From positions 26,970,001 to 27,034,000 of the forward strand of contig NW_027266265.1 in the NCBI RefSeq assembly GCF_022045235.1: a stretch of DNA of 64,000 nucleotides. Reading direction: 5' to 3'. Both the position numbers and the translations under genes were made by a program. The stretch comes from Haliotis cracherodii (taxonomy: Eukaryota). The notes under the pieces were generated by a model. The model was not told the DNA's origin and ran no database searches. It was given only the letters and a program-made list of their open reading frames with translations. This document shows, in pieces, positions 644-48,324 of this stretch. Positions within the stretch are counted from its first letter, which is position 1, and each line of letters opens with the position of its first letter.

Positions 644-3600
644 ATCTTCAAGTTCGCCATCATCCTTTTCATCATCAGACGACGACAGTTCCCCATCCTG
701 CTGAAAGATTATATCACACAATGCAAACCATGGTAAACTCTTGCACTTGCTGTGTATTTAATTCACACCATGTTCAAACAAGGATATTAACTGTTCACAT
801 CAAGATCCTCGGTTCAAATGATTAATATTGCCTGTATCCTGGAGCAAACCCTAGCTTCAAGCATGTAATAAACTTCCTTATCTTACCTTGCATTAAGGCC
901 CTCATTTCAGATTAGTTACTGATGGACAATTCTGTCCCACAATAAGTGGATGCTACAGTATTCTAGTGGGTTTGTTTGACTTGCTTGAGTCTAGAGTAGA
1001 TTATACAACCCATCCCATGTTGGTTACCCTAAACATCCTCCTGTAATGAAATTTTGACTTAAAAATAAATGTGGACCTGTATTACCCACGTAAGATGGAG
1101 TTGGTTATTATCTCATGTTTACCAACACTGTAAATCATGAAGTAAGTGAGTCACCAAATTAATCTGAATGTCAACCCTTAGCCTAAAATGTGTCATGAAC
1201 TTATCATGCTTAATGTGAGTAACCCCTGCCTTTAAACTAAAAAAAATAATCAGAACACAATAACACCAAGACACAGACTTAGAATTCCATAACATAGTAT
1301 AGGGTGATATCGATTGAATAATATCATTGCCACCTTCACAAACTTAACTCCAACTGCTCAACATGAAATCAAAAGTAGGAGGTTCATATGAGATTGTACA
1401 GATTCTAAGTGTTGTTATACAAGTTAGCACAATCCCTTGAATGTAAATGAGAGTGTTATGAATTCACAACAAATGCTTTTCTTTTACCAGATATGTTTAG
1501 TATGAAGGCAAGCTGTGTTTTGCTTGTAATTATAAGTGATAAGATTATCTGACAGGTTACCCAGAACAAAGACTCTGTCATACACGGTTGGCAATTGTCA
1601 TAACAGCTTGATCAACTTTTGTAATCAAACTGACCACACTTGATTCAGAGTAGCACTGTCTAAATCTAGTACTCAATTGCAATGTTTATTATGAGCTTAG
1701 TTATGTACCGTCAAGTCCCGTAAATCCAACATGGCTGGTTGCTTATGATTATGTCGGATTAATGAGTATGTCGGATAAACGAAATTTGGTAGTATCAACT
1801 TCGTGATCGAAAATCGGAAAACTACACGAAAGATAACGATACAAACATGTAATAAAAAATGAAGAATGAAATATTCATATTGTTATGTTACATTGTTAGC
1901 AAAAAATGTTTTCTAATCATGCAACCTCTAAAGCTTAACACAAAACAACTATTATGGACTGTATGACTGTTTCGAAATACTTTAAAAAGCATGGTCTGGA
2001 ATGGAAGTCGGCAGTTTGAAACTTGTATCGCAAAACTCAAGAAAGCTGATTTCTTACTGGCTAATGACGTCTTCCTGTTAGTCATTGCATTGGTCGGTCA
2101 TAGTTCGCGAAAGGTTGTTCTGACGTGACCTGTAATGGGGTGTCTTCGGCGGTAGTGAGAACTTGTATATGATTTTAATGAGATTGAGGTAATCTAAGCA
2201 TGTAATAAATCCTGTTTTGTTTTATCAAAGCATTCATTGTTTATTGGAAAGCAACTTTCTCTGCAGCCGTTGTAATAATTGACTTGTATCGATTCAAAAC
2301 ACGGGCTGTGTGCTCGCGGGCAGATGACCACAGAGTACGCTGATCCCTGTGTCAGATTAACGAGACTGATTAATGAGTGATTTTGGTAATTCGTTGCAAA
2401 TTAGGGGTGTAGGAGTCAGAATGCGAGACTGTCGGATTACGAGTCTAAATAGCACTGACTTAATTGGTTCCAATCATTAGTGTTGAATAAAGCTGATTGT
2501 CGGATTAACGAGACTTGACTGTATGTCATCGCTTCTGGCCATTTGCAGTGAACTTCAAATTACAATATACGCCAATACGTCCAAATAAAAATGTGTTACA
2601 TTATTTTAAGGCAAGAAAGGGAAACTCGCTTTTTTTCACATTAACTTCAAGATTTGAAATATTTTTCGTCAATATCGCAGCCAGGGCAGACACACCAAAC
2701 TAGGCTTCACACATTGTGTCCATGTTGGGAATCAAACCCTGGTCTTCAACATAACAAAGCAAAGCTTTGACCACCAGGCTATCCCATGATCCCTCAAAGG
2801 GCTTATGTTCCCATGGTGGCAGAAATAGACAGTTAATCAGTTGGTCATGGTTACCATGGTTACAGGAGTGGATAATTTATCAGTATCACATTCAATGTAA
2901 CCTGCAAGTCCAACATTATTTAATGAGGGTTATCGCAAAGTGCATAAATCAAACTCATCACACTACACGAAGACAAAATGCCATATAAAAGGCTTAACAA
3001 AATCTTTTCTGCATTTGGTGTCTAATCATGCTGATGTTGAAATGACTATTTGATGTTTCAAAAGTAAAAAGAAAACCTTTTCATCTCCATCCTTTTGCCT
3101 GTCCTCATCTTCTCCTGCTTCCTTGGAGTCATTGGCATGCCCATGCATATCATCACCTTCCTCTTCATCGTAATCTAGTTCAACATGCTCTTCATTGAAG
3201 CTGGTATTTGACTGCACCTTACCTGCTTTATCACTGTCTCTGTGGACAGGAGAAATATCATGACCATTAGGGATGGCACTGGAATTGCGATTTTCACCTA
3301 TGTCCTCAAATTTTCTAAGAGCATCTACACTTTCCACAGAAATGTTCCTCAAAATATCTTTTTCCGGGTCCCTTGAACTATGAACATCTGACTCTGGATC
3401 AATGTTACTTTGTGACACTTCAGAGCTACCAGATGTATCATTAGAAGGTGCACTGCTATGCTCTATTGATGCCCTGGGTGAACTAGTAACAACACTACTA
3501 TGTACAATGGGCACACTGACATCGCTTTCTGAGAATATTTGTGGTTTGTCAATACTCTGAGATACTTTGGAATCTGCATCAACCTGAGGTAAAGAATGCT

Positions 3601-4552
3601 TGTCATCATGCGGGGAAGATTCTGATTCTCTGACACTATCATCAGAATCTCTTGCCATTGCTTCCCTACAGCTGACAGCACTGTCACATACACCATCCTC
3701 GCTCTGTTCAGTGTTTCCTTCCATCAGGTCAAGAGAATACAGGTCCTCTTCTTCCTTTGAATCACACTGTTCCTTATTTTGATATTCAGCCACAGCTTCA
3801 GAAACCTTGTCAGTAGATGGACTCAGAGGTGATGAAATGTGTCCTGAGCTGTCAGCATGTTGTCCATCTTCTATCTGGGCAAAAGAAGTTGCTATTGCAT
3901 CTTCTTGGTCAACTGTGGAGTCTGCACCCAGGTCTTCTTGTTGAGGATAAACTTCAGAGTCATTTTCTGTCATAGATGATGGTTCTGGGGATGCTGGGGT
4001 GTCATCTCCCCATGTATTCTGTACACTATCACCTTCTTCTTGAACAGAACTTGCTTCACCTTGCTCAGAACCTTGGGTGTCTTCTTTATCTTCCATTGCA
4101 TCACTTGCTTCATGCAAATGAGAACTGGTCTCAGTTTGCAGTTCTTGAGGACTACCTGGACTCTCTTCGCCATGATCGGGACTAGGAGATATGGGTCTTT
4201 CCCCCTGCTGCATATCAACAGGTGATCTGATGTTTAAAGGTTGTTGCTGTTCAACAACAACTGGAAACTCATGTTCCATTGGAGATGCATATTGAGCTGG
4301 TGGTGACTCTGGGCTTTCCTCACTGTCACTCTCTTCAACACTTGCTTCATTTTCATTTAATTCAGCACTCTGAGCATCAGTTATCATAGATTCCTGACTT
4401 TTAGGATACTCCTCATCATAACCATAGTCACTCTGGGGTCCAGAGCTGGGTGACTTATCAGGAATAAGAGCATCAATGTCAATTGCTTCACCATCTTTGT
4501 CTTGTTCGGTCACATTTTCAGGTGATTGTTCCATTAACTCCACAGCTTCCAT
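644..4552 (-). CDS. ZC3H18: 5' part of a gene encoding a highly acidic, disordered N-terminus; probable zinc finger CCCH domain-containing protein 18 (continues beyond window start)
   Basis: Large coding exon 4552-3077 (ATG at 4552, acceptor at 4572-4574, donor AAG|GTTTTC; 492 codons, D/E/S-rich). Small exon 700-644 reads QDGELSSSDDEKDDGELED with donor GAT|GTGAGT. Non-coding exon 1 ends at 4902 (GTGAG donor). EEHVELDYDEEE followed by DGE..D repeats resembles the ZC3H18 N-terminus (EHELDYDEE...DDGEIDDGEIDD). The zinc finger is not in the window, so the symbol is tentative. Confidence 0.6.
1708..2521. mobile_element. Non-autonomous Tc1/mariner-superfamily (pogo/Tigger-like) element
   Basis: Imperfect ~24-bp TIRs (CCGTCAAGTCCCGTAAATCCAACA ... 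TGTCGGATTAACGAGACTTGACTG) flanked by TA on both sides. No ORF. A second partial copy lies at 25474-25838. Confidence 0.8.
2671..2785 (-). mobile_element. Degenerate tRNA-derived SINE
   Basis: GGCTTCACACATTGTGTCCATGTTGGGAATCAAACCC...ACCAGGCTATCCC is reverse-complement similar to the 6548-6718 SINE. Confidence 0.7.
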
Positions 4553-4901
4553 TTGGCTGGTAAGAAGTTCCCTGCATTGGAAACACATGACAACATAAAT
4601 ACTAAGAATTACAATTTAGCAGGGACAGGCAATAGGTGATGTGAAACATACAAATATAGAGCAATTATGACCCGTCAAAAGTTTTAATTTGGCAGCATTG
4701 ACAGTAAAATGACGCATAATTCATACACTCAAGTATCGTCATTCCATATCCTTCGACCAATAATGAAAATACTGACACAGTAAACAGTATGTCCAGACCT
4801 GATCACATTCACAAACCGTCTTGTCACACGTTTTCTGTGTCGATTCAAAGGAGACGCTTTCTCAGTCAAATTACGGAAAATAAATGAAACCAAATCCTCA
4901 C

Positions 4902-24268: not shown

Positions 24269-27200
24269 TCAACCAACGATGAGTGTTCCCTCATCAGGGA
24301 AGGAATATACAGGGACCTCCAGGTTCAGTGGAGCCGGTCCTTTTCTGATTCTACCCGAGGCGTCGTAATGGGAGCCGTGGCAAGGGCAGTAATACCCGCC
24401 AAAGTCACCAGCATTGGCTATTGGAACGCAGCCTGAAACAGGGAGAATGTAAACATGATTACATGGTACAAGCAAGACAGAGAGACAGAAGTGATTTGTG
24501 AAAGTACCACTCAGAGTTCACTTAGTTTTTGAAATGTTGAATACAAGTTATAAGTTAAAGATAACCATGACTAGACCAAAACCATGTCTCACATGCATTA
24601 TTTTGACCAAGACAAGAAATGGGCACAAGACCGTTCAGCTTGGTTAGCAGTCCAACCACATCAGTTTTCAACTTGAACACTTTCACAGACAAGCATTTCA
24701 GTTTGATTTGCCGAGATTTTGGTTGTAATGATAAGTACCAAACCTTTAACCTGGGGTGACCATTTCATAATTAAATCAACATTTTTCGGGACAAACTGCT
24801 ATGGCCAAAAATAATGCAGTGTCCTTTAAGCTACTTGGGTACTAGTTTTTAATGCAAATTCCATTATCAGTAGGAGTGTTGAAGTGATGAAGAGACAGTA
24901 TGTACTGTTCAGTTTCAAAAGAAAAGGCCATAACCAGTATTACAACATCTTAATTTTGTGACAATGTATTCATTACATTTATTCTCAAGTTGGCAACCTT
25001 TAGAAAACGAGTTGGCTGAGAAGGATCAGTTGAAAAGAAAGAAGCAATAATGCGTGATGGGGAGGAGGGTAAGGGCATTACAATCTCACTGTTCGGAATC
25101 AGCAGTGCTTACAATTATAACATCAAATTAGATGAATCATGTGCTCACCTAAATGTGTACAAACACCAAGTAAAACAAGCCACTCCGGGTTGGTTGTCCT
25201 CTCGTTGTCATGTTCAGCATGTCGCAAAGTGCCGAGATCAACGCCCTGCTCCACTTCAATCTCCTCAGAGGTACGATGTCTGACAAACAGAGGCTTGCCT
25301 CTCCACTTGAAAGTGACATTCTTTCCCTCTGGAATTTCAGATAGCTTGATCTCGATCTTGGCCAAAGCCAATACATCAGCTGATGCGCTGAGAGTGCTGA
25401 CGATGTCTGTAACGATGTTCTTAGCAGCATATGCAGCAGTCACACTGCCACCTTGATAGAAGAGAACCACATACAGTCAAGTCTCGTTAATCCAACAATC
25501 GGCTTTATCCGACACTAATGATGTGAACCGATTAAATCAGTGCTATTTAGACCCGTTAATCTGACAGCAACGAATTACCCAAATCACTCATTAGTCTGAC
25601 AGTGATGAGCCTACTCCGTGGTAATCTGCCCGCGAGTACACAGCCTCGTGTTTTGATGCAAGATGAGTCAGCTAGTAGCTGCACATTTCAATGACTGCAG
25701 AAATAAACTTGCCGAACAATAAACAATTAATGTTTTAAATAAGCAAAACAGGATTAACTACATGCTAAGATTACCTCAATCTCATCAAAATGACCTTTCG
25801 CAAACTTTGACCTACCAATGAAATGACTACAGGAAGTCAAGAGTAGTACTCATGACTAAAGAGGCCAAGGTAAAACACTGAGTGGTACGTTCACAAATGG
25901 TCATGATGATAAGTTATTGGTCTCAATGATGTAAGGAGGATAACTCTCGTTCCAAGAAGTTTGAATTTTCTTTATTCGCTAGTGAATCAGATCGATGTCT
26001 TCATCAGTTGTAAGTTGTTATGGTTATGTAGGAAAGTTATTAGAATGACATGTGTCAGTTATATTTATGGATGCTCAAGAGTGAGTGAGTGAGTATGTTT
26101 TACGCCGCATTTTAGCAATATTCCAGCGATATCACGGCGGGGGACGGATGCTCAAGACTAACATTCACTTGAAGTAGTAAGTTCTATTGGCTATCATCAG
26201 TCAAGTGACCCCTCCTAACTAGACCAAAGTAACCCAGTTTAACAGCGAGAAGAAACTGTGAGATGCTGTGCCCCTTGCATAGGACAATCCCCCTTCCTAA
26301 CCCCCCATTTCTAGGTCACCTTAAAGCATACACATAGCTATTATCCACACCAAGACAAATATACTTATTTACCTCCAACAATCATGTAAGTAAAAGACCG
26401 TCGAGCAACAACTGAGTTCTGTGAGGACTGGTGACTATCCTTGACTCCATCACGACGATAAAAAGAGAAGTCAGGGACTGGGATGTCTGTGTGAGCAAAC
26501 CTCACTTGATTTGAAGCTGAAAATGACAAAGCAGTCATGAACAATCAGTTGTTAAGTACACTGATAAAACTTGAATCAGACTTGCATCTAGATATAGACT
26601 GATTCATAAACACATTATAAACATTATTAACGAAACTTGCACAAAAGAAGAAAGGATATTTAGTCTATAAACCGAGCTCCAAAGACTGCTTGGAATCATG
26701 GAGTAGTCACATAGGTATTGATAGTTTTCTTTGGATATTCAATATATCTTTAATCCCTTGGGTCGAATCTGTAGAGGTGCAATGATATCGAACACCACAT
26801 CATGATACATAACTCAATACTCCAGAATAACAACACAAGGCAGGAACTGAAATACTTGTTTCTTTCAGCTGAGTGAAATATGGCGACAAACTGTTTCTTC
26901 CTTGTTAACTAAATCCATCACAAAAAAGAAATAAGAAGCTCAAATGATCAAGTAAAATATACTATTTTGTATCGTCATGTAGCCCTATGTATTGTGGATA
27001 GTATTGAAGACCACAGATCATGGTGCATCGGAGTTCCAGTGTATAGTTTCTCCCTTGCCAGTATTTTGGGTATTTTTAAACCAATATGAAGACATGTGTT
27101 TACGCAATTCCACATCAAATGCAGCTCACAACAAAAATACAGTTTTAAGTTACAATAAGTGAGATGTAGCACTTTTGCATGATTCACTGCAGTAGCATTC

Positions 27201-30330: not shown

Positions 30331-33300
30331 ATGGCGAGCTCAGATAGCGAAAGTGCTTACGAGGTAAACCTTTATTTTAATACTTCTCGGGCAACTGAGT
30401 TTTTTGTTTCGTTTGAAAATATCATTTTGTTGTTACTCCTACTTAATTTTGTTTGGCATACGGCAGATCAATTCTTATTACTTGGTGAGCATGTCAATGT
30501 TTACGACTAAGTAGAGTGTGGTTTCGATTTCCGCATTGTGCGTCTTCACAGAGTCAACAAAAGAACCGTCTCGTAAAAAACACTGTAAGTTACTGTTATC
30601 AGTTAACGAATTCATAGTATGTAGCATTGTAACTTTCTGATGGTATTAAATCTGCTAAGTAAAGGATCACGCCTAGAGCCGATACCAATATTTCTTACTT
30701 GTCGAAGAAGCCACTAGGCTACCATGTTCCCCAAGTGTTTATACAGGCCAAGCGCACAGGGCTTGTCGCGATCATGCGGTATCCATTACTTTAACTACCA
30801 GCCACCTGCGCTTCAAGTGTGATGGTGATCAAACATGCATGTCAAAGGTTAGGCTCTACATAAAGGTCAGGTTAACGCTTAAGAGTATTGTTTACTTAAT
30901 GTTTTAGAGAAGTGGGAAAGATGATGTTTGAAATCGCAATATTAGATAGAATGTAAAGTGCAATGAAATAGAGATTTTGTGTTTGTATGTTCACACACAC
31001 CTTAGGGATACACCAGTATGCATTTTACCGGAACCTACCCACCATGTTTACTTTATGTCATTAATATAGCCAAAAACATAGCAGCATTACAATTTGAAAA
31101 AAAGATGATAAAGCTCAAAATACGCAGAAAAGAACTACTTGCATGGATGGAATATGAATAGCTATGAATAAACCTCAGAATTAAATACCAAACTCAAAGC
31201 AATTCATGAGTATTGAAAAAAAGTAGACATCCAAAATATTTTAAAAAGTTAAGTAATGGTGTGAGACATCAATCAAGGGGTGTTTCTTGAAATGTGGATG
31301 TCACTGCTGATGAGGTTTCCGCACATCATTATGCTTAGATCTAACTTCTATTTTCAATCAATATTGCTATGTTCAGGGATGTCAAATCTCCGCGGAAACG
31401 CGGAAAATCGTTTTTTAAAACAGTAGTCCTCGGAAAAAATCATCTTCCGCGTAAAAATTTAATAAGATTTAAAAAAAAAACTCCCTGAAAAATATGATCG
31501 AAAACCGGACAGTTTGCGCGGATTGTCCTGTTTTCGATCAGAGCTTTCACCAACATAGATTTTCGGACATCATACGTTTTCTGTCACGAATACTTGCACT
31601 ATAACGTGGGGTGTGGCGTCACACAGAAATTGTAAATACTCAGTCAGCTGATGGCTTGTTTTTAAGACAAAGTGGTCTTTTAGCCTGTAAGTGAATGAGA
31701 TGTTTTACAGTTGTTCATGTGATAAGCGAGAAAACTATGAATGTTTCTTCAGCGTCCGAAACCCCATGTCATGGGGATATATGTTGTATTAATGTCTTAT
31801 GTTTGCAATGGAGTTTTGTTTTTTTTCATCAAAAGGTAAGTACAAGGTCAGTTTTTTTCAATATGCTTCAACATGGGGAAAGGGTCAGACATTGCACGCT
31901 TATGACAGTTGTCCTTGTGTCTGGGGGATGGGGGTTGAAGTTTATGTCAGTATTGCTCCGTGAAAGCTATGCCCGATTTTTTAAAAGTACTGATTAAACT
32001 TCGAAATTTTACTGCATCTGCCATCTTGTTTATTTGACTTATTGACTTTTGCCATAGACTTATTACATTTCTTGTTGCGAATGTTGTCCAAACTGCAAGA
32101 AATTGCTTAAAATGCAATCAAATGTTTTAAAAATTTCTGGGGGGGGCATGCCCCCAGACCACCCTAGACTTTTCCTCTTTTTTTCGGGAAAACCTGCTCA
32201 CATCCCTGATTTCAGGAGATTGTTGTATTGTGACATCCCTTCCTTTTAGGAACATCACTATATGAGGATGTCAGTTAGCATAATATAGTGTCTGATGGTT
32301 GGTAACGTAAGGGTTAGGTGTAAAGTATTGAACAGGGGAATGTTGGCATTTGAAACTGAAAAGTTTGGTCTAATACTGTTTTAAAAACAGGATACAATTT
32401 TAAGATCCATTCTCACAACATAAACACTTAGTACAAAACGTTAAACAATAACTAGAATTCATCTATTACTATGCAGGTGGACCAGATCTTGAATCAGAGG
32501 AAGAGGAAAGGTGTTTTGGAGTACTTGGTGAGATGGCGAGGGTTTGGGAAGGAAGAGGACAGCTGGGAACCTGGCAAGAACCTCTCAAACTGTGCCGCTG
32601 CCATGGCTGCATACATCAAGCTAACGGTAAGGGGATTTATGTCTCACGGAAGTAACTTCTGTGGAGCTAGTGTTAGAAATAGATCAAAATCAAGACTTTT
32701 GTTTCATTTGTATACTCATAGACTTCTCAGTTTTGTTAGATGAACATTTGGTCATAAAAGTCCCCTAAATTCATGCAGATTTTTGCAATTAATTATCAAA
32801 GTCAAGACTGTTTGTTAAACTTGTGTTAAAGAAATGAAAAAAAACAAGATTCAAAGACTGAAAATGAAACATGCTGAAATAATTATCAATACTATTGTAG
32901 CAATACTATAGAGTACATACAGTAATTCCCGCTTTAGTTTTGTCAATCTTAAATCCACTCATAGGCGCCAGCTAAAGCTCAGAAGAAGTCTTCGAAGTCA
33001 AGATCACGGTCACGGTCAAGGTCAAGGTCAAGGTCTCGATCCACCAGCCGAAGCAGAACAACAAAGTCAAAGAGCAGTCGACCACAAACCCCGACAGCCC
33101 TCAGTAGAACTCCTAGATCCAGGTCACGGTCATCATCGCGGGGGAGACAAGCCAAACAGCCAGAAACTCCACCACGACAGTCAAAAAGGACAGAAGTTGT
33201 CACAAAAACTTCTACAAACAGAACTCCAGGCAGAATTGAAAGGACGACAGAAGTTGTCAAAGTGAGTTCCTATAGGATGCAGTTGTTTGTTGGTAGATCA

Positions 33301-35751
33301 ATCAGGGTTTGGACAAACATGAAGAGTACTTGAACTTGAACTTGGATTTGTATTAAGAGGTTTCAGAAGGTGCTATAATTTAAATAGCAAAATCCCCTTG
33401 AAATATTTACAGAAACAGTTTTCAATCTAATGTCACGGCTTTGTTTACTTCCCTGTCAACATTACAACTGGGTAAATAAATCCCATGGCAGTGCTATTAT
33501 CAGAATTAGTCCAGTATCAGTAGCAGCTGTGTAGCCTCATTCTGACCAATATTGAAAGGAGGTCATGTGGTCCCATTAACCGATACGTTTGTTTTGAATG
33601 CACTTAGACAGGATCATTTAAGTTTTGTGTTGAACCGTGCATATTACCACATGGTGTAAGCATTAAAAATTGTTGCACATGTCGAGGTAGAGAAATACGG
33701 TGCAATATTTGTGATGTAGAAAGGAGAGAGACATAAATCTGATGGGGAATGGTATCAGGTTATTAGTTTTGGAATACCTGATGCTCTAAAACTGTCAAAG
33801 TGTTGATGTTAAAAGTACTTCATGTTAATTTTTAAATTGGTCGAATATCAATGCATATAAATTTTCCTTGAAAATGTTTTTGACCTTGAAAAATCCAGCT
33901 TGAATTTTGAACCCTGCCAATAAACACTGCAACTGACACTGTTCAGGCTATCTCAGTATCTGTCACACAGTGTAAACAAACAAGGTATTTTAGCATCATA
34001 CTCACAGAATGTGTCCATGAACATCTTACTGTGCATGTAAATAGTTATCAGATCATAAAACTGTTCTCTTTTTGGCTATTAAGATACAGTGTTTGGTGTT
34101 TTGATGAAAATTTGCAAATGATTTCAAACCCATGAAACTTCTTGGCATACAAGCAGTTAAAGCTTTGCATATATTCAAACTAGCTGCTTATTTAAAGGCA
34201 TAAATGGCATTGCAAATGATAGAATCATTCAGGGTACATGAAGGAAAGTGAGTGAGTATGGTTTTACGTCACTTTTAGCAATATTCCAGCAACATCACAT
34301 GGGGAGACACCAGAAATGGGCTTCACACATTGTACCCATGTGTGGAATCAAACCTGGGCCATTACCCTGAAAAGTTAGCTTGTGAACACCCTTAGTCAAC
34401 AGTGTTTCTTATATGACTGATAGAAATTCCTTCTTCCTGTTGAAGCAAATACGAGACGACTCGAGGCCGTCTGAGGTGAAGACAACACGTGTTGTACAGT
34501 CTCGGATAGAGGTGAAGACGATGGAGGACAAAGTTGACGGGAAGCCTGTGGCTGCCTCACCACAGCAAGGTATAGGCAATAGCCTGTACACTCTGTGGCA
34601 GACGGCTGACACGGCAGTCCTCATTCTGTTTGTCTGTGTCTCCATCATTGTTCTCAGCTATGTTGTGGAGAACTACTGCAGGTACGTGCACACATACATT
34701 ATGCTTTCATTAACCATGTAACACTGTTTTAGCGTATCTGAAAGTTGACTGGTCATATGGAGTAATATGATGTATCGTAGTCGAGAACAATGCCATATGA
34801 TGTCACCAAAACAATATATTCACTGAAACAGATTGGTGAAAAGTTGGTCATGAGTCTCTTTTTGGAGCAGGGCACTTAATACAGCGAATGCAGTATCTAG
34901 AAACATGAAAATCAAACATGTAATACTTTGATCTGAAATATTGTACTAGCCTGGACAGGTTTTGTTTCTATAGCACAACAGTATGTTAATGCATCGTGTA
35001 TAACCGTGTACAAGTCAGTGCAAGTCACACCAGTTGTTGATACCATGAGTCAGGGTACATGTAAAGCAATGGACGTTGTCACCAAGCCTTGCCACCATAT
35101 CCATTTTAGTTGCCTGCTGCAAGTAGTAGAATGCTGTTTGACTTGTCACAGATATGATTCCTCATAGAATTCTTTCAAATGGGCCGTGGAAGTGGTGGGG
35201 GTAGCCTGGTGCTTTACGCATTTGCTCATCACATGTAAGACCTGGGTTTGATTCCCCACATGGGTACATTGTGTGAAGCCCATTTCTAGTAACCCACAAG
35301 TTGTGGAGCCGCTCCAAATGGTCGTGTGCAGTTCTTTTGACACGTGTCATGAAATGGATACGGGTCGAGGTCACAAGAAAAATGTTTGTGGTTACACTTT
35401 TCTTCCAAAAGTATGAATGGCATTATCATTAACTTGGTATGTACTTTCTACGGGATGGAACCCTGCTAAGAAACGGATTTGGAAAAATATAGGTCCAGTG
35501 TCAAAGTCACCTTTCAGGTGTTAGAAGAACTTTGTATTTACTGTAGTAAATGGTTCAGGTTTGTTTCACATTGAAGCTCAAATTTATATTGCAGCCCATC
35601 TGAAATGTGGAAGTTTCTAGTTGGTCTATACACATCTGTAATTGGAGCTGTTGTTGCTGTGTGGCAGTGTGTGACGAGGTCATCGGTAAGGGTTTTGGAG
35701 ACAGCAGCAAACTTCACCCGCAACAGTTGGAAGAAGGTGACCACCAATTAG
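30331..35751 (+). CDS. Uncharacterised 290-aa protein: N-terminal chromodomain, RS-dipeptide region, two C-terminal hydrophobic (transmembrane) segments
   Basis: Exons 30331-30363, 32477-32626, 32965-33261, 34446-34681, 35595-35751 (873 nt, GT-AG, phases 0/0/0/2). Chromodomain: YEVDQIL...EYLVRWRGFGKEEDSWEP..NL. (RS)7 at aa 74-87. Hydrophobic segments AVLILFVCVSIIVLSYVV (aa ~217-234) and FLVGLYTSVIGAVVAVWQCV (aa ~246-265). Confidence 0.85.
31374..32208. mobile_element. Probable hAT-like non-autonomous element in intron 1 of the chromodomain gene
   Basis: Short TIRs CAGGGATGT ... ACATCCCTG and a subterminal GGGGGGCATGCCCCC hairpin. No clean TSD seen. Confidence 0.45.
34248..34358 (-). mobile_element. 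tRNA-derived SINE copy (same family as 6548-6718)
   Basis: GTGAGTGAGT...TTTTAGCAATATTCCAGC...GACACCAGAAATGGGCTTCACACATTGTACCCATG. Confidence 0.85.
35190..35290 (+). mobile_element. tRNA-derived SINE 5' half
   Basis: GGGTAGCCTGGTG...CTGGGTTTGATTCCCCACATGGGTACATTGTGTGAAGCCCATTTCT. Confidence 0.8.
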
Positions 35752-38119
35752 ACCAAGAGGGAGCTCTCTCAGGCCACAGCGGCCTCTAGTGCAGACATTC
35801 GTAGATGTGTGTACCTTATAGCAGGGACAGTGACTCGACTTCAGCAGGCAGAAGTTGTAGCATCTCCACATTCAACAACGCAACACATGAAATCAGGATT
35901 GGAATTGTCAAATTGTGCATTTTCACTTTTTATTGAAGTCATGAAATTTGTATTTACAGTGGTTGCTCTGACGTTTCAGTCTGGAATCTTATATCTCCTG
36001 ATTCTTTTTAAGTTTTAAACAGTTTTTTTTTTTAAAGAATAGCTCTTCAACGGGTCGCTTTAATTTCTACTTGTTGAATAAATATGATATTGAAATATTT
36101 TACCAGTTAAACTGTAAGCTCAAACTATATGTGAGATTCCATATTAAGCTATTCTATATTTCCATTCTTAACATTCCCATCATTTTAATTCTGCATGGAC
36201 CAAAGAAAGAGTTACCTCCCCTTACATGTCAAACCAAGCTTCAGACTGAAAGCTTCTGTCTAGTATTGTTTATCAAAACCAGATATTTTTTACCATTTGT
36301 AGCGCCAGTTTGGATGCAGCATTGGATAATGAATTTGTACAGTGAGGACACTTTGTATAGGAGGAATTAATGGATGTTCATCGTTGTTGGCATGTGTACT
36401 TAGAATGGGCTTCCTCAAGCTATTTTTATATTCTTACTTGATCTAGTCTTAGCACGTAAATTTCAGCCTTGCAGAATGTTATAATATTTATGTAGTTTCT
36501 AGATCATTGTGTTTAGATTTTGTGTAATTTTTGCTTTACAAGTATAATGTGTACAAAATCAGAAGTGCTATCAATTTATTTCTCTGAAATAGGCAGCATT
36601 TGACAATTATATGCTAAATCATGTAGATGGAATCAACACAAATCATGAAACACTTGACACGAAAAGAACACCAGTTTTGCAGCTAATCATACCATGATAA
36701 ATTGAAAACTTTTGACTAGAAACAGTATCTCCTTTGTAATGAGGGTAGTTGTTCTACACTTATATGGTTTGGAGATGAAATGTTACTGAATATGTATGCA
36801 AACAATATGCATCCAAGATATTTTCACATTATTCCACTTCATACTAGAAGTTCACCAACTGTCACGTATGTAGATCCATGGTAGAGGAAACACACAGAAC
36901 AGTCCTTCTCATCTGTGGAGGAGACATTACTACAGAAATGAAGGTGTACTACCTGATGATGGTGTTCTTGCTCAGAGGTTCATGTTTAATCAATGTCATC
37001 TTTCATTTCATTTAACCACTGTAAGTGGAGTTTGTCTACCAAATATGTGTTCTTTTACATACTTCGCTCTCATGAAATGAATTTAGCATTTTTAAGACTT
37101 TTAACTTTACATAGCCATGTTTTACATAACTGTATTAATTATCCTGCATGCTCTTACTACTCAATAATTACTTTTGGTCATAATGTTGTCACTAGTTTTA
37201 ATGTTTCATTTCATTTCTCATCTAAATCATCTTGATTTTCAATGAAAATTGTGCCAAACATTTCAAATTTCAACCTCTTTGGTTTTATTAGATTTTTAAT
37301 TCATGTGTTGTGTAAACTGTATTTAGAAGTATTCGGACAATGCATATGAAGGATATGCAAATACTATGATGTAGTGCTTCAGGTTATAGCTTGTATGTAC
37401 TATGTACTGCCTCCTGCAGACAGTGTAGATTGCAGAAGTCAAGTTAGTGGCTTTTGAGCTGAACATTTATTCTTGAATGTACTAGAGGATCATGAAGTGA
37501 ACACAGTGTGCAACAAGTCAGCAGCCAGACATGGCCTTCATAATGGGCAGCTAAGAAGTGTTCATGAACATGCATCTGTAACCTTGTAGCACTGTTTCAC
37601 CAAAACTCAGTATGCAGTGATGTGACGTAGATGTGCCTACATATACTAATAAAACAAAACAAATTTGTAAGTTCTTGACTCTTATTTCTATTCAAAGAAA
37701 ATGTCTCACATTGAGTTATAAAAAAGGAGTTCAATTACCCAGAACCTTGTGTTTAATTCAATACAATTGTACTTAGCTCAACATTTTCATGTTTGATCTC
37801 AGATGTGATGTGTTGTAGTTGAGAATGAGAAATGAGTCAATGTTTTAATTTATCCTGCATTACTCCTTAATGCATCTTCTGCTTACCTTATAACAGAAAT
37901 GAAGCTGTATGACATTCTAGGCTGAAGAAAAAAGTCTGAAGCCTGACCACATGACCGAACGGAAGTGACGCACTGACATGTATGACCCTGATTCAACCTT
38001 TACAGCATAATAGTTGTGTAACCAAAGTGAAAATTTGGTCATTGTGCCATAAAACTCACAGTAGGTGCAATACTGGAAAACCATATGTTAGACCCCGCCG
38101 AACACAATGTTTCATCTAA

Positions 38120-41778: not shown

Positions 41779-42097
41779 TATCATGGAAGATATTATATAT
41801 GCCCATCAACTGAATGCAAATCAGATACTTCCTTGGATGCACACATGCAAATAGGCATCCTGTGTGATCAGGCATCCAAATGACTCCTAAAAATCATCAC
41901 TGTTTATAAAATTGTTATATTTGTAACTTTTCAGGTACTTATGTGGTGGATGTGGCAATTTGTAGCTGCACTGGATCAAATTAAGGGCTGTATTGAGTTT
42001 TTGTTGTTGGTTTGATCTTCACATCAATACCTCAAAGCATCTCTGAAACAATTGAAATATGGAACAAATAGACAGTCATGTTCATGCATGCTTGAAT

Positions 42098-43993
42098 ACT
42101 TCACCACTAAAACCTGTTACACAAGCGTGTCTTCCTTTTGGGGTTGTGGGACAGAATAGTTCACCAGTAACACAAGCTTGTCTCCCTTCTGGGGTTGTGG
42201 GACAGAATGGTTCACCAGTAACACAAGCTTGTCTCCCTTCTGGGATTGTGGGACAGAATAGTTCACCAGTAACACAAGCTTGTCTCCCTTCTGGGGTTGT
42301 GGGACAGAATAGTTCACCAGTAACACAAGCTTGTCTCCCTTCTGGGTTTGTGGGACAGAATAGTTCACCAGTAACACAAGCTTGTCTCCCTTCTGGGGTT
42401 GTGGGGCAGAATAGTTCACCAGTAACACAAGCTTGTCTCCCTTCTGGGGTTGTGGGACAGAATAGTTCACCAGTAACACAAGCTTGTCTCCCTCCTGGGA
42501 TTGTGGGACAGAATAGTTCACCAGTAACACAAGCTTGTCTCCCTTCTGGGGTTGTGGGACAGAATAGTTCACCAGTAACACAAGCTTGTCTCCCTCCTGG
42601 GATTGTGGGACAGAATTGTTCACCAGTAACACAAGCTTGTCTCCCTTCTGGGGTTGTGGGACAGAATAGTTCACCAGTAACACAAGCTTGTCTCCCTTCT
42701 GGGGTTGTGGGACAGAATAGTTCACCAGTTACACAAGCCTGTCTCCCTTCTGGGGTTGTGGGACAGAATAGTTCACCAGTAACACGAGCTTGTCTCCCTT
42801 CTGGGATTGTGGGACAGAATAGTTCACCAGTAACACAAGCTTGTCTCCCTTCTGGGATTGTGGGACAGAATAGTTCACCAGTAACACAAGCTTGTCTCCC
42901 TTCTGGGGTTGTGGGACAGAATAGTTCACCAGTAACACAAGCTTGTCTCCCTTCTGGGGTTGTGGGACAGAATAGTTCACCAGTTACACAAGCTTGTCTC
43001 CCTTCTGGGGTTGTGGGACAGAATAGTTCACCAGTAACACAAGCTTGTCTCCCTTCTGGGGTTGTGGGGCAGAATAGTTCACCAGTAACACAAGCTTGTC
43101 TCCCTTCTGGGATTGTGGGACAGAATAGTTCACCAGTAACACAAGCTTGTCTCCCTTCTGGCATTGTGGGACAGAATAGTTCACCTGTAACACAAGCTTG
43201 TCTCCCTTCTGGGGTTGTGGGACAGAATAGTTCACCAGTAACACAAGCTTGTCTCCCTTCTGGGGTTGTGGGACAGAATAGTTCACCAGTAACACAAGCT
43301 TGTCTCCCTTCTGGGGTTGTGGGACAGAATAGTTCACCAGTAACACAAGCTTGTCTCCCTTCTGGGGTTGTGGGACAGAATAGTTCACCAGTAACACAAG
43401 CTTGTCTCCCTTCTGGGGTTGTGGGACAGAATAGTTCACCAGTAACACAAGCCTGTCTCCCTTCTGGGGTTGTGGGACAGAATAGTTCACCAGTAACACA
43501 AGCTTGTCTCCCTTCTGGGGTTGTGGGACAGAATAGTTCACCAGTAACACAAGCCTGTCTCCCTTCTGGGGTTGTGGGACAGAATAGTTCACCAGTAACA
43601 CAAGCATGTCTCCCTTCTGGGGTTGTGGGACAGAATAGTTCACCAGTAACACAAGCTTGTCTCCCTTCTGGCATTGTGGGGCAGAATAGTTCACCAGTAA
43701 CACAAGCTTGTCTCCCTTCAGGGGTTGTGGGACAGAATAGTTCACCAGTAACACAAGCTTGTCTCCCTTCTGGCATTGTGGGGCAGAATAGTTCACCAGT
43801 AACACAAGCTTGTCTCCCTTCTGGGGTTGTGGGACAGAATAGTTCACCAGTAACACAAGCTTGTCTTCCTTCTGGGGTTGTGGGACAGAATAGTTCACCA
43901 GTAACACAAGCTTGTCTCCCTTCTGGGGTTGTGGGACAGAATAGTTCACCCGTTACACAAGCTTGTCTCCCTTCTGGGGTTGTGGGACAGAAT
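42098..43993 (+). repeat. Minisatellite, 51-bp unit, ~37 near-identical copies
   Basis: Unit TCACCAGTAACACAAGCTTGTCTCCCTTCTGGGGTTGTGGGACAGAATAGT (HindIII site in most units). Confidence 0.97.
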
Positions 43994-45395
43994 GGGGATG
44001 GGTATTGAATGTTAAAAGTGTATCACAATGTTCTGCGATGCACAAGGCCATAATGAGATACGTATTGCGGTATATTGTACAATTCTAATTTTGAATTCAA
44101 GAAGCAATCTGAAACGAAGGTATGAATTGAAGTTTAGAAATAGAACAAAAATGATGCTGGGAAAACAATCATTACTCATTCAATAAATATGTAACTTTCT
44201 TGGGGCCCCGGGTGCACGCTCCAGGGAAGTGAAGGTATTTAGCAAGTGTATTACAAAAAACACATGGTAAATATCACTATTTGAAATCACCTGATATACC
44301 AACATAAAACAAATCATACTCTAATACATATTTAAGAATAAACCTCAATTCACTGATAAATCGGTAGTACCGCCCACACTTAGTTACCAATGATAATGTC
44401 TCATATTTAGGCTGGTTTGGGGATGCGAATCCTTAATCGGTGGATCCTGGCATGGCTAAGGAATGTAACTATGCACGACAACTCTGTGGTACGTTAGACC
44501 AGTGGGCTACCTGCAACCTCCACTGGACTGTAAAAGTAGTTACACCATCTATTAACAAAATCATACCTGGAAAGACTGCTTTATGTTAACTCTTCCTTAA
44601 TGTCAAATATGTAAACAAAATGTAAGTATGAGTTTTGAAACATGTTCATGTTTCATACTACATACCATATCCTTTGTCTGTTAACACAGAATTAATCAAA
44701 TCTTTGCAAGGATATATTTAATGAGGTTAAGTTGAGAATAATGTGTCACATGCAGTGACAATCTAGAGCGTGAGAGTTTAATACAAATGACTTAACACTT
44801 ATGTGTAAGTTAGATTATTCCTATAAATTAGTACATTAGTCGTATTACATCAATGAGTTTGAATTTAAGAGGCTATATTATCCAAAGTTATTTCAAGCCT
44901 TCAGAATCTTCAGGTTTAAAACTTCACATGGACTAAATCATGATGTTGAAATTGTTAAAAAAAGAAAAAGAAAAAAAGGTGTTAGTCCCATATATGTTTA
45001 TTACATATGCATGTACCATACAATTTCAAATACATGCACAGTGACAAGCTTCAATACATGGTTTGTTTCTAGTTGAAAGAAAGTCTCCTTGAACAAAAAG
45101 GGGAGAATGTGTAACATTCTTTCAACATATAGCCTGTATTCTTTTCTTCTTGTACGATGCACTGTTAATGAATCTGTTCCACACATAAATAATCTAAAGA
45201 CATTGGTCTAGATCATGTCTGGTTATAAAAGAGGTTTGATGAATTTGATTTTGAAAGTCAACATTCAGTTAGATCTTCATACAGAACGTCTCAAATTACT
45301 GCAGGCAAAGTTTCATGTTCAGGTTCGGGGTTAAGTGGTGAAAATGGCCATCTATATTGAACAATGTCCCAATAAGGTTACATTGTATTCTGTTC

Positions 45396-45758
45396 TCAGT
45401 TCGTAAGTGCAACAAGTGCTTCCACAATATTCCCTTTATGTTCTCTCAGAACTCTCTCCGCCTGAATTCGGCCAATTTCTATTTCATTCACAATAAGATC
45501 TACGTCATCTTTGTTTATTTTCACTTTTGAAAGTTCTCTTTCTCGTTCTTGTCTTTCAGAAGCTTCCTTGGCTTTGCTGACATTTACAACCCGCATGGCA
45601 TCGCTGATGCTCTGAGCGGAGATTTCTGTTTCTTCGACATAATCAGTGACTTTCTCTAAATCGGCTGCACCGGAGTCATGTTTGGCAACTTTCTTTGATT
45701 TGCCTTCTTTTTTATCTTCATTCTCTTCGATTTCAACGTTTTCTTCCTCCGTCGCCAT
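45396..45758 (-). CDS. HYPK: Huntingtin-interacting protein K (NatA-associated chaperone), single coding exon, 120 aa
   Basis: MATEEE...KHDSGAADLEKVTDYVEETEI...ERERELSKVKINKDDVDLIVNEIEI...LREHKGNIVEALVALTN, i.e. the HYPK motif plus C-terminal UBA-like domain. ATG in good context (AACATGG) at 45758. Confidence 0.95.
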   Translation of the reverse strand: MATEEENVEIEENEDKKEGKSKKVAKHDSGAADLEKVTDYVEETEISAQSISDAMRVVNVSKAKEASERQERERELSKVKINKDDVDLIVNEIEIGRIQAERVLREHKGNIVEALVALTN

Positions 45759-46065
45759 GTTGGAACATGTGCGTGGTTCCTCGCTTACCTCCCTTGGTTC
45801 CTCCCTGACAAGTTGCACTCGAACAATGCGTATGCGCTTCAATCTCATATGCATTATAAGCCTTGGAAGAAGAAACATAGTCCATAAATCAACTTAAATC
45901 ATGCATCTTGTCTATGAATACATATCAGCAATGATTTATGCATGGCCCTTACTGTCCATAATGCCCTATCGAAGAAAATGTGTTTTTTTTACATAAACAT
46001 GTAAGGAAAAGAGAAAGAGCGTGTCGGACAGTTTATATAATATAAGCCTCCCAAATCAACCAGCG

Positions 46066-48196: not shown

Positions 48197-48324
48197 NNNN
48201 NNNNNNNNNNNNNNNNNNNNNNNNNNNNNNNNNNNNNNNNNNNNNNNNNNNNNNNNNNNNNNNNNNNNNNNNNNNNNNNNNNNNNNNNNNNNNNNNNNNN
48301 NNNNNNNNNNNNNNNNNNNNNNNN
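48197..48324. other. Assembly gap (128 N)
   Basis: Run of N abutting a tandem array. Confidence 1.

Follow-up and report, generated by a model that had tools for sequence, protein, structure and literature searches.

The physical fastening of chromatin carrying histone H3 methylated at lysine 9 (H3K9me) to the nuclear envelope is still unsettled. CEC-4 and LBR are the accepted membrane-associated H3K9me tethers, and CEC-4 is the one clear direct reader at the envelope; according to a 2025 paper, direct recognition of H3K9me2/3 by LBR or lamin A/C is still an unanswered question. CEC-4 is a small Caenorhabditis elegans protein whose HP1-like chromodomain directly reads H3K9me. Published work describes it as an inner-nuclear-membrane or membrane-associated protein that does not need lamin for its place at the envelope but does need its C-terminal part outside the chromodomain, which is disordered and membrane-associated. 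CEC-4 has no obvious mammalian homologue, and a transmembrane helix is not stated in the CEC-4 literature that we found. Here, we describe a five-exon gene of the abalone Haliotis cracherodii, located in a 64,000-nucleotide (nt) stretch of contig NW_027266265.1 (positions 26,970,001 to 27,034,000, assembly GCF_022045235.1; hereafter, the window), which is predicted to encode a protein of 290 amino acids (aa) combining an N-terminal chromodomain, a linker rich in arginine-serine (RS) dipeptides, and a C-terminal membrane helix. The best reading of this protein, which we hold with slightly better than even confidence, is that of an inner-nuclear-membrane tether for methylated H3.

Several described proteins resemble parts of this layout. 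LBR contains an N-terminal Tudor domain (a reader of the Royal family), an RS segment regulated by phosphorylation, a first membrane helix after approximately 200 residues, and eight membrane segments that form a sterol reductase domain. Emerin and LAP2beta combine a small nucleoplasmic chromatin module at the N-terminus with a disordered linker and a single C-terminal membrane helix; they lack a signal peptide, and their chromatin contact is made by the LEM domain and BAF rather than by a methyl-lysine reader. The abalone protein shares with CEC-4 a small size and an HP1-like chromodomain but differs from it, as far as published descriptions can be compared, in having a conserved hydrophobic helix and an RS linker. 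Like LBR, it places a Royal-family reader at the N-terminus, followed by an RS segment and a membrane helix after approximately 200 residues; unlike LBR, it has a chromodomain in place of the Tudor domain (PF09465) and no match to the sterol reductase family ERG4_ERG24 on exons 4-5. It shares with emerin and LAP2beta the N-terminal chromatin module, the disordered linker, and the C-terminal membrane helix, and it likewise has no signal peptide, whereas there is no sequence similarity to these proteins and no Pfam match to LEM. By analogy of layout, emerin and LAP2beta and, functionally, CEC-4 appear to be closer analogues than LBR. The chromodomain shares the same aromatic cage with those of HP1/CBX, CDY, and CDYL proteins, but neither the chromoshadow domain of HP1 (Pfam, exons 3-5), nor the enoyl-CoA-hydratase-like domain of CDY/CDYL (the abalone protein being just 290 aa long), nor the C-terminal Pc box of Pc-class CBX proteins is present. 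HP1, CDY, and Pc-class proteins are soluble, whereas the abalone protein has a predicted membrane helix, and unlike SR splicing factors it has no Pfam match to RRM beside its RS domain.

The five predicted exons lie on the forward strand between positions 30331 and 35751 of the window (Table 1) and sum to 873 nt, that is, 290 codons plus TAG. All four introns are of the GT...AG type with compatible phases, and the reading frame is kept across the exons; the start codon stands in the context AAAATGG (A at -3, G at +4), with an upstream in-frame stop 180 nt away. In this analysis, the exons of the window were searched singly, and the near-identical H. rufescens protein served as a proxy for folds, alignments, and searches of solved structures and atlases. 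The five exon translations map onto consecutive residues 1-11, 12-61, 62-156, 157-234, and 236-286 of the 286-aa H. rufescens RefSeq protein, with identities of 11/11, 50/50, 94/95, 75/78, and 51/51, respectively, and the skipped residue 235 corresponds to the codon that exons 4 and 5 share. Such an in-order match to an annotated protein is far more than chance expectation. Two Haliotis relatives match exon 4 at 96% and 87% identity, the latter being a 284-aa H. rubra protein with its parts in the same order, detected in an exon-4 search of 1.8 billion representative proteins; two bacterial repeat proteins from the same search were treated as chance matches, and a search of the ESM Atlas with the H. 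rufescens protein gave no usable match. The Pacific oyster orthologue (239 aa) is found at full length on dozens of Logan contigs of 1.4-2.3 kb, which look like assembled mRNA. A genome search located exon 4 only once in the 1.18-Gb genome. From these comparisons, we consider that the predicted gene is real and single copy in Haliotis.

A profile search for a second paralogue in the genome gave generic chromodomain exons only, and its best extra match (C2:28531343-28531861), which lacks a membrane helix, was rejected. The region around that match (L022:1088-2092, minus strand) holds an intronless, Lys-rich chromodomain open reading frame of 334 aa, approximately 1.5 Mb from the window and related to the gene described here via the chromodomain only. 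As a separate observation, a 46-nt inverted repeat with 93% complementarity (34309-34354 and 35245-35290), formed by elements resembling short interspersed elements in introns 3 and 4, flanks exon 4, the membrane-helix exon, whose length of 236 nt is no multiple of 3; such pairs can promote exon skipping or back-splicing.

Exon 2 alone matches the Pfam family Chromo (PF00385) with 53.6 bits (E-value 2.1e-14), well above the curated cut-off of 25.1 bits. Residues Y10, W31, and F34 align with the cage residues of HP1alpha/CBX5, so that the three-residue aromatic cage is intact, and because Y10 is encoded in exon 1 and W31 and F34 in exon 2, the cage depends on the join of these two exons. Over approximately 50 residues, the chromodomain is 35-45% identical to the chromodomains of HP1/CBX, CDY, and CDYL proteins; the closest solved sequence is CBX5 (E-value 2e-13), followed by CDYL, CDYL2, CBX1, CBX2, CDY1, and MPP8. 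An AlphaFold2 model was built on the H. rufescens orthologue, whose chromodomain is identical to that of the window protein, with the family alignment. It shows strands at residues 12-21, 24-31, and 40-43 and a helix at residues 44-61 with a predicted local distance difference test score (pLDDT) of approximately 90, which corresponds to a three-stranded sheet with a C-terminal helix. Foldseek placed this model at target-normalised template-modelling scores of 0.8-0.9 and a root-mean-square deviation of approximately 1 Å from the H3K9me3-bound chromodomains of CDY1, CBX1, MPP8, HP1, and Rhino; the structural neighbours also include chromodomains bound to partners other than histones, namely a DNMT3A peptide on MPP8 and a SETDB1 peptide on CBX7.

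In a complex test, chromodomain residues 1-66 were combined with residues 1-40 of H3 from the same genome (L010:1483-1890), methylation not being represented. The pair scored 0.39 against 0.02 for the best control, with a contact agreement between runs of at least 71% and a partner pLDDT of at least 51. The mark of this test is reached by 51 of the 78 solved complexes and by 2 of the 108 mismatched pairs; at scores of 0.60 or lower, only 5 of the 78 solved complexes reach it, as do all 4 passing mismatches. The verdict of the test was weak support; the pass may reflect memory of solved chromodomain-H3 complexes, and the test adds only a small increment toward H3 binding. With regard to specificity, the sequence and model data do not separate K9 from K27.

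The chromodomain is followed by a disordered, RS-rich linker of approximately 150 residues, with a pLDDT of approximately 43. Exon 3 contains (RS)7 at aa 74-87 (counted on the exon-3 translation) and additional SR dipeptides, together with TPPR and TPGR sites of the CDK type, a conserved TPxRQSxR motif, and short repeats of the TEVV type; exons 3-5 gave no Pfam family at E-values up to 1. An RS run and S/T-P-x-K/R sites were found in 21 of the 26 family members scored, and by analogy with LBR they are candidates for control by SRPK and CDK1. The RS run itself (33002-33043) is longer than its counterparts in H. rufescens and H. rubra, a difference that looks like variation in the length of a coding hexanucleotide repeat between close species. 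The initial annotation of this stretch had read it as five clean exons encoding 290 aa without a signal peptide, with an intact Y10/W31/F34 cage in an N-terminal chromodomain and with (RS)7 at aa 74-87, extra SR dipeptides, TPPR, and TPGR downstream; the GT-AG introns, the total of 873 nt, and the hydrophilic N-terminus bear out the gene model, the Pfam match and the CBX5 alignment agree with the domain assignment, and all of the linker elements could be located in exon 3.

Hydrophobicity was assessed by the Kyte-Doolittle mean of 19-residue windows (19-mers) and by insertion free energies (dG) on a Hessa-type scale, which was taken as position-independent and summed. With a Kyte-Doolittle mean of 2.82 and a dG of approximately -2.8, the segment at aa 216-234 is a clear predicted membrane helix, whereas that at aa 247-265 (mean 1.86, dG approximately +2.7) is predicted to be only marginal. 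Of the 26 family members scored, 25 have a negative dG for the first helix; Ostrea is the exception (+0.36). The best 19-mer past this helix scores +2.7 in Haliotis, +1.5 to +1.9 in Dreissena and Mercenaria, +4.9 in Ruditapes, +5.8 in Patella, and +8 to +16 in the other scorable tails, so that the second helix is not conserved as a membrane span beyond Haliotis and a few bivalves. Because this second helix is marginal and not conserved, the family design is best described as a single predicted C-terminal anchor. Proteins are considered here as tail-anchored if they have no signal peptide, a single helix at the extreme C-terminus, and a tail of approximately 30 residues or fewer. Four members fit this description, their chains ending 3-7 residues past the helix: Lineus, the unplaced JGI protein, Tegillarca, and Nucella paralogue B. 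For the Lineus and JGI proteins the distance is 3-6 residues, and the Lineus protein is truly tail-anchored in layout. In Haliotis, the tail past the first helix is 56 aa long and contains the second, marginal helix; it would either re-enter the membrane as a hairpin or lie on the luminal side. AlphaFold2 gives two long helices at residues 201-233 and 236-285 (pLDDT 86-95), which are not informative on the membrane, and the N-F-T sequon and the helix-flanking charges are uninformative on topology.

The Patella homologue served as the first query and an alignment of six members as the next, and together they yielded 27 related proteins. They comprise members from gastropods (Haliotis, Patella, Batillaria, Littorina, Babylonia, Nucella, Aplysia, Plakobranchus, Lymnaea, Physella, Biomphalaria, and Bulinus), bivalves (scallops, oysters, Tegillarca, Dreissena, Ruditapes, and Mercenaria), and the nemertean Lineus longissimus, as well as the unplaced JGI protein. 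A precomputed Chromo match is present in all members except a Patella caerulea model that lacks the chromodomain, each member carries 6-19 RS/SR dipeptides, and one strongly hydrophobic 19-mer (Kyte-Doolittle 2.1-3.1) occurs in all 27, at a distance of 3 to 77 residues from the C-terminus. The Asp directly before this helix is invariant, and a Glu follows it in 25 of the 27 proteins. The best-conserved part is the chromodomain: W31, W41, and E42 are invariant across the alignment, a [YF]-E-V motif is conserved at the exon 1-2 junction, and cage positions 10 and 34 are occupied by Y/F in 19/27 and by F/Y in 20/27, respectively.

A maximum-likelihood tree separated gastropods from bivalves and recovered Patella plus Haliotis, caenogastropods (with one duplication), heterobranchs, pteriomorphs, and heterodonts; the Lineus and JGI proteins are on long branches, and their placement is unsure. 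The gene tree matches the species tree, as vertical inheritance of one gene from a time before the gastropod-bivalve split. The sequences are already in RefSeq under conflicting automatic names, including "chromobox protein homolog 2-like" (H. rufescens) and "chromo domain-containing protein cec-3-like" (H. rubra), as well as CBX1/2/5-like, cec-1/cec-3-like, CDY-like, testis-specific chromodomain protein Y-like, HP1, and hypothetical protein. Since none of the second domains that mark HP1, CDY, and Pc proteins occurs here, these names are, judging from domain content, misleading and hide the distinct architecture. Full-text literature searches for chromodomains combined with a transmembrane, tail-anchored, or C-terminal transmembrane segment turned up no account of such a family, and the architecture appears not to have been recognised before.

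The same genome contains a separate LBR-like gene, a multi-exon ERG4_ERG24 gene on contig C45. Just upstream of its ERG4_ERG24 exons are an RS-rich exon (Table 1) and then an exon with the "EFGG" entry to the first membrane segment. The VTPTRQSTR and TVVKK motifs of the RS-rich exon recall two motifs of the chromodomain-anchor family, TPxRQSxR and TEVV, but the statistics back the RS run only; the resemblance was rejected as a sign of common origin with the LBR RS region, the BLASTP E-value being 0.016 and the hhalign alignment covering just an 8-residue RS run. The LBR Tudor domain (PF09465) gave no match in a genome-wide Pfam search, which for a short domain searched exon by exon is no proof of absence, and a pattern scan within 10 kb upstream of the LBR-like RS exon found no Tudor exon either. 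A second ERG4_ERG24 match (C34:62978443-62979582, plus strand) has no stops, lies inside a 490-aa open frame, and is apparently intronless. As far as these sequence comparisons go, the abalone protein resembles LBR in layout and not in descent. In the initial annotation, it had been called LBR-like, with two hydrophobic helices and with no recognised characterised family. The order of reader, RS segment, and membrane helix holds, but there is no Tudor or sterol reductase domain, and the profile match to the LBR-like RS exon is confined to the RS run; both hydrophobic stretches are present, but just the first is conserved and clear as a membrane helix. The checks suggested there, for orthologues and for a separate canonical LBR, revealed the same architecture in 27 proteins of two phyla and the LBR-like gene on C45, for which no Tudor exon was found in the searches above, and the impression of an uncharacterised family is consistent with the inconsistent automatic names and the lack of a describing paper among those searched.

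If the protein is a tether at the inner nuclear membrane, it could work as follows. Because there is no signal peptide and the N-terminal part is large and charged, the chromodomain is expected on the cytosolic/nucleoplasmic side; with the helix more than 200 residues away from the hydrophilic N-terminus, the N-terminal part would stay there while the helix inserts into the endoplasmic reticulum (ER), whose membrane runs on into the nuclear envelope. Membrane proteins whose nucleoplasmic part is small diffuse to the inner membrane and stay there if bound to chromatin or lamina. The N-terminal part of approximately 215 residues would be small enough for diffusion past the pores to the inner nuclear membrane, where binding of the chromodomain to methylated H3 tails (K9, perhaps K27) would retain the protein, and the same polypeptide would thereby fasten heterochromatin to the membrane. 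In mitosis, the tether would be loosened when the RS and TP sites are phosphorylated, as is known for LBR. The more extended proposal, a one-polypeptide H3K9/K27me tether of molluscs and nemerteans that predates the gastropod-bivalve split, is switched off in mitosis, and is a possible membrane-spanning counterpart or distant relative of CEC-4, is a tentative one to which we give somewhat less than an even chance. If true, it would represent the simplest possible tether and a second, independent direct reader at the envelope beside CEC-4.

Several observations weigh against a tethering function. In all six heterobranch orthologues (Aplysia, Plakobranchus, Lymnaea, Physella, Biomphalaria, and Bulinus), the third cage residue, F34, is replaced by Ala or Asp, and W31, the RS linker, and the anchor are retained. 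Retention of the family without a complete cage hints at a role beyond methyl-lysine reading, and the ligand of the heterobranch proteins may have been lost or changed. The K/R residues flanking the helix, summed over the family, number 53 on the N-terminal and 43 on the C-terminal side, which does not fix the orientation. A C-terminal anchor alone predicts only membranes of the ER system, and the RS and CDK sites may simply mirror the composition of the linker.

Part of this evidence leads to a different location. The protein could be anchored in the ER or another cytoplasmic membrane with no chromatin tethering, either as a latent chromatin or RNA regulator that is freed by proteolysis or as a reader of methylated non-histone proteins at the membrane. 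That chromodomains bind partners other than histones is illustrated by the complexes of MPP8 and CBX7 with DNMT3A and SETDB1 peptides, respectively, among the structural neighbours. The anchor taken by itself predicts nothing more than ER-system insertion, and the heterobranch members keep it while losing a cage residue. On the other hand, Haliotis and most members have an intact cage, H3K9me3 readers are the nearest relatives with solved structures, and the small, basic, RS-rich N-terminal part resembles the envelope-targeting part of LBR; moreover, no protease-site signature was noticed, although no dedicated search was made. We regard such an ER function as unlikely, though it deserves to be taken seriously.

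The conserved RS/SR dipeptides are also compatible with a protein that is chiefly of the RS-domain type, resides at the nuclear envelope or in the ER, takes part in RNA processing or export, and uses its chromodomain as an RNA-binding or protein-docking module, not to read histones; a weak Tudor-knot match on exon 2 (19.6 bits, below the cut-off of 20.8 bits) points in the same direction. Such a role is quite improbable, considering that neither RRM nor another RNA-binding domain was detected with Pfam and that the part under the strongest conservation is a chromodomain with the canonical cage and the WEP residues. Finally, the join of the chromodomain and membrane-helix exons might be a gene-model artefact fusing two genes. 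This can hardly be reconciled with the recurrence of the architecture in 27 proteins from independent annotations and on transcript-like Logan contigs, the exact fit of the exon order to the RefSeq models, the clean phases and splice sites, and the conservation of the linker and helix exons along with the chromodomain, and we consider it very improbable indeed. Attachment of methylated H3 to the inner nuclear membrane remains the function that we prefer, at the confidence given at the outset.

Table 1. Coordinates of the gene and related features (positions in the window unless a locus or contig is named).
Feature	Position	Strand	Content
Exon 1	30331..30363	+	ATG start, 11 codons; last residues Y10-E11; Y10 is the first aromatic-cage residue
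Exon 2	32477..32626	+	50 codons; chromodomain core with W31, F34, and the W41-E42-P43 motif
Exon 3	32965..33261	+	99 codons; disordered linker with (RS)7, extra SR dipeptides, TPPR, and TPGR
Exon 4	34446..34681	+	78 codons + 2 nt; more (T)EVK repeats, then the conserved membrane helix
Conserved predicted transmembrane helix, aa 216-234	34611..34667	+	Invariant Asp before, near-invariant Glu after
Exon 5	35595..35751	+	1 nt + 51 codons + TAG; C-terminal tail, one N-F-T sequon
Second, marginally hydrophobic helix, aa 247-265	35617-35673	+	Within exon 5
Candidate 3' end	36077..36082	+	First polyadenylation-signal hexamer past the stop (pattern scan)
LBR-like RS-rich exon	L009:2331-2693 = C45 about 49036630-49036992	-	Carries VTPTRQSTR and TVVKK motifs

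Elsewhere in the window, an exon for the membrane region of a Rieske iron-sulphur protein (UCR_TM, E-value 1e-7) lies at 25123-25470 and an exon for the UBA domain of HYPK (E-value 7e-17) at 45396-45878, both on the minus strand. These neighbours are ordinary housekeeping genes, and neither gives a sign that the chromodomain gene sits at a mobile element or at a join in the assembly. Open frames of 520 and 649 aa without a Pfam match are found at 3026-4588 (minus strand) and 42059-44008 (plus strand), respectively; in the latter, the opposite strand is open too, which suggests repeat or low-complexity sequence. The window also includes a run of 128 N at 48197-48324. In the wider genome, C37:1-25534 is a tandem histone cluster with a period of approximately 4.25 kb, in which H3 is present in at least six identical copies and H4 lies on the other strand.

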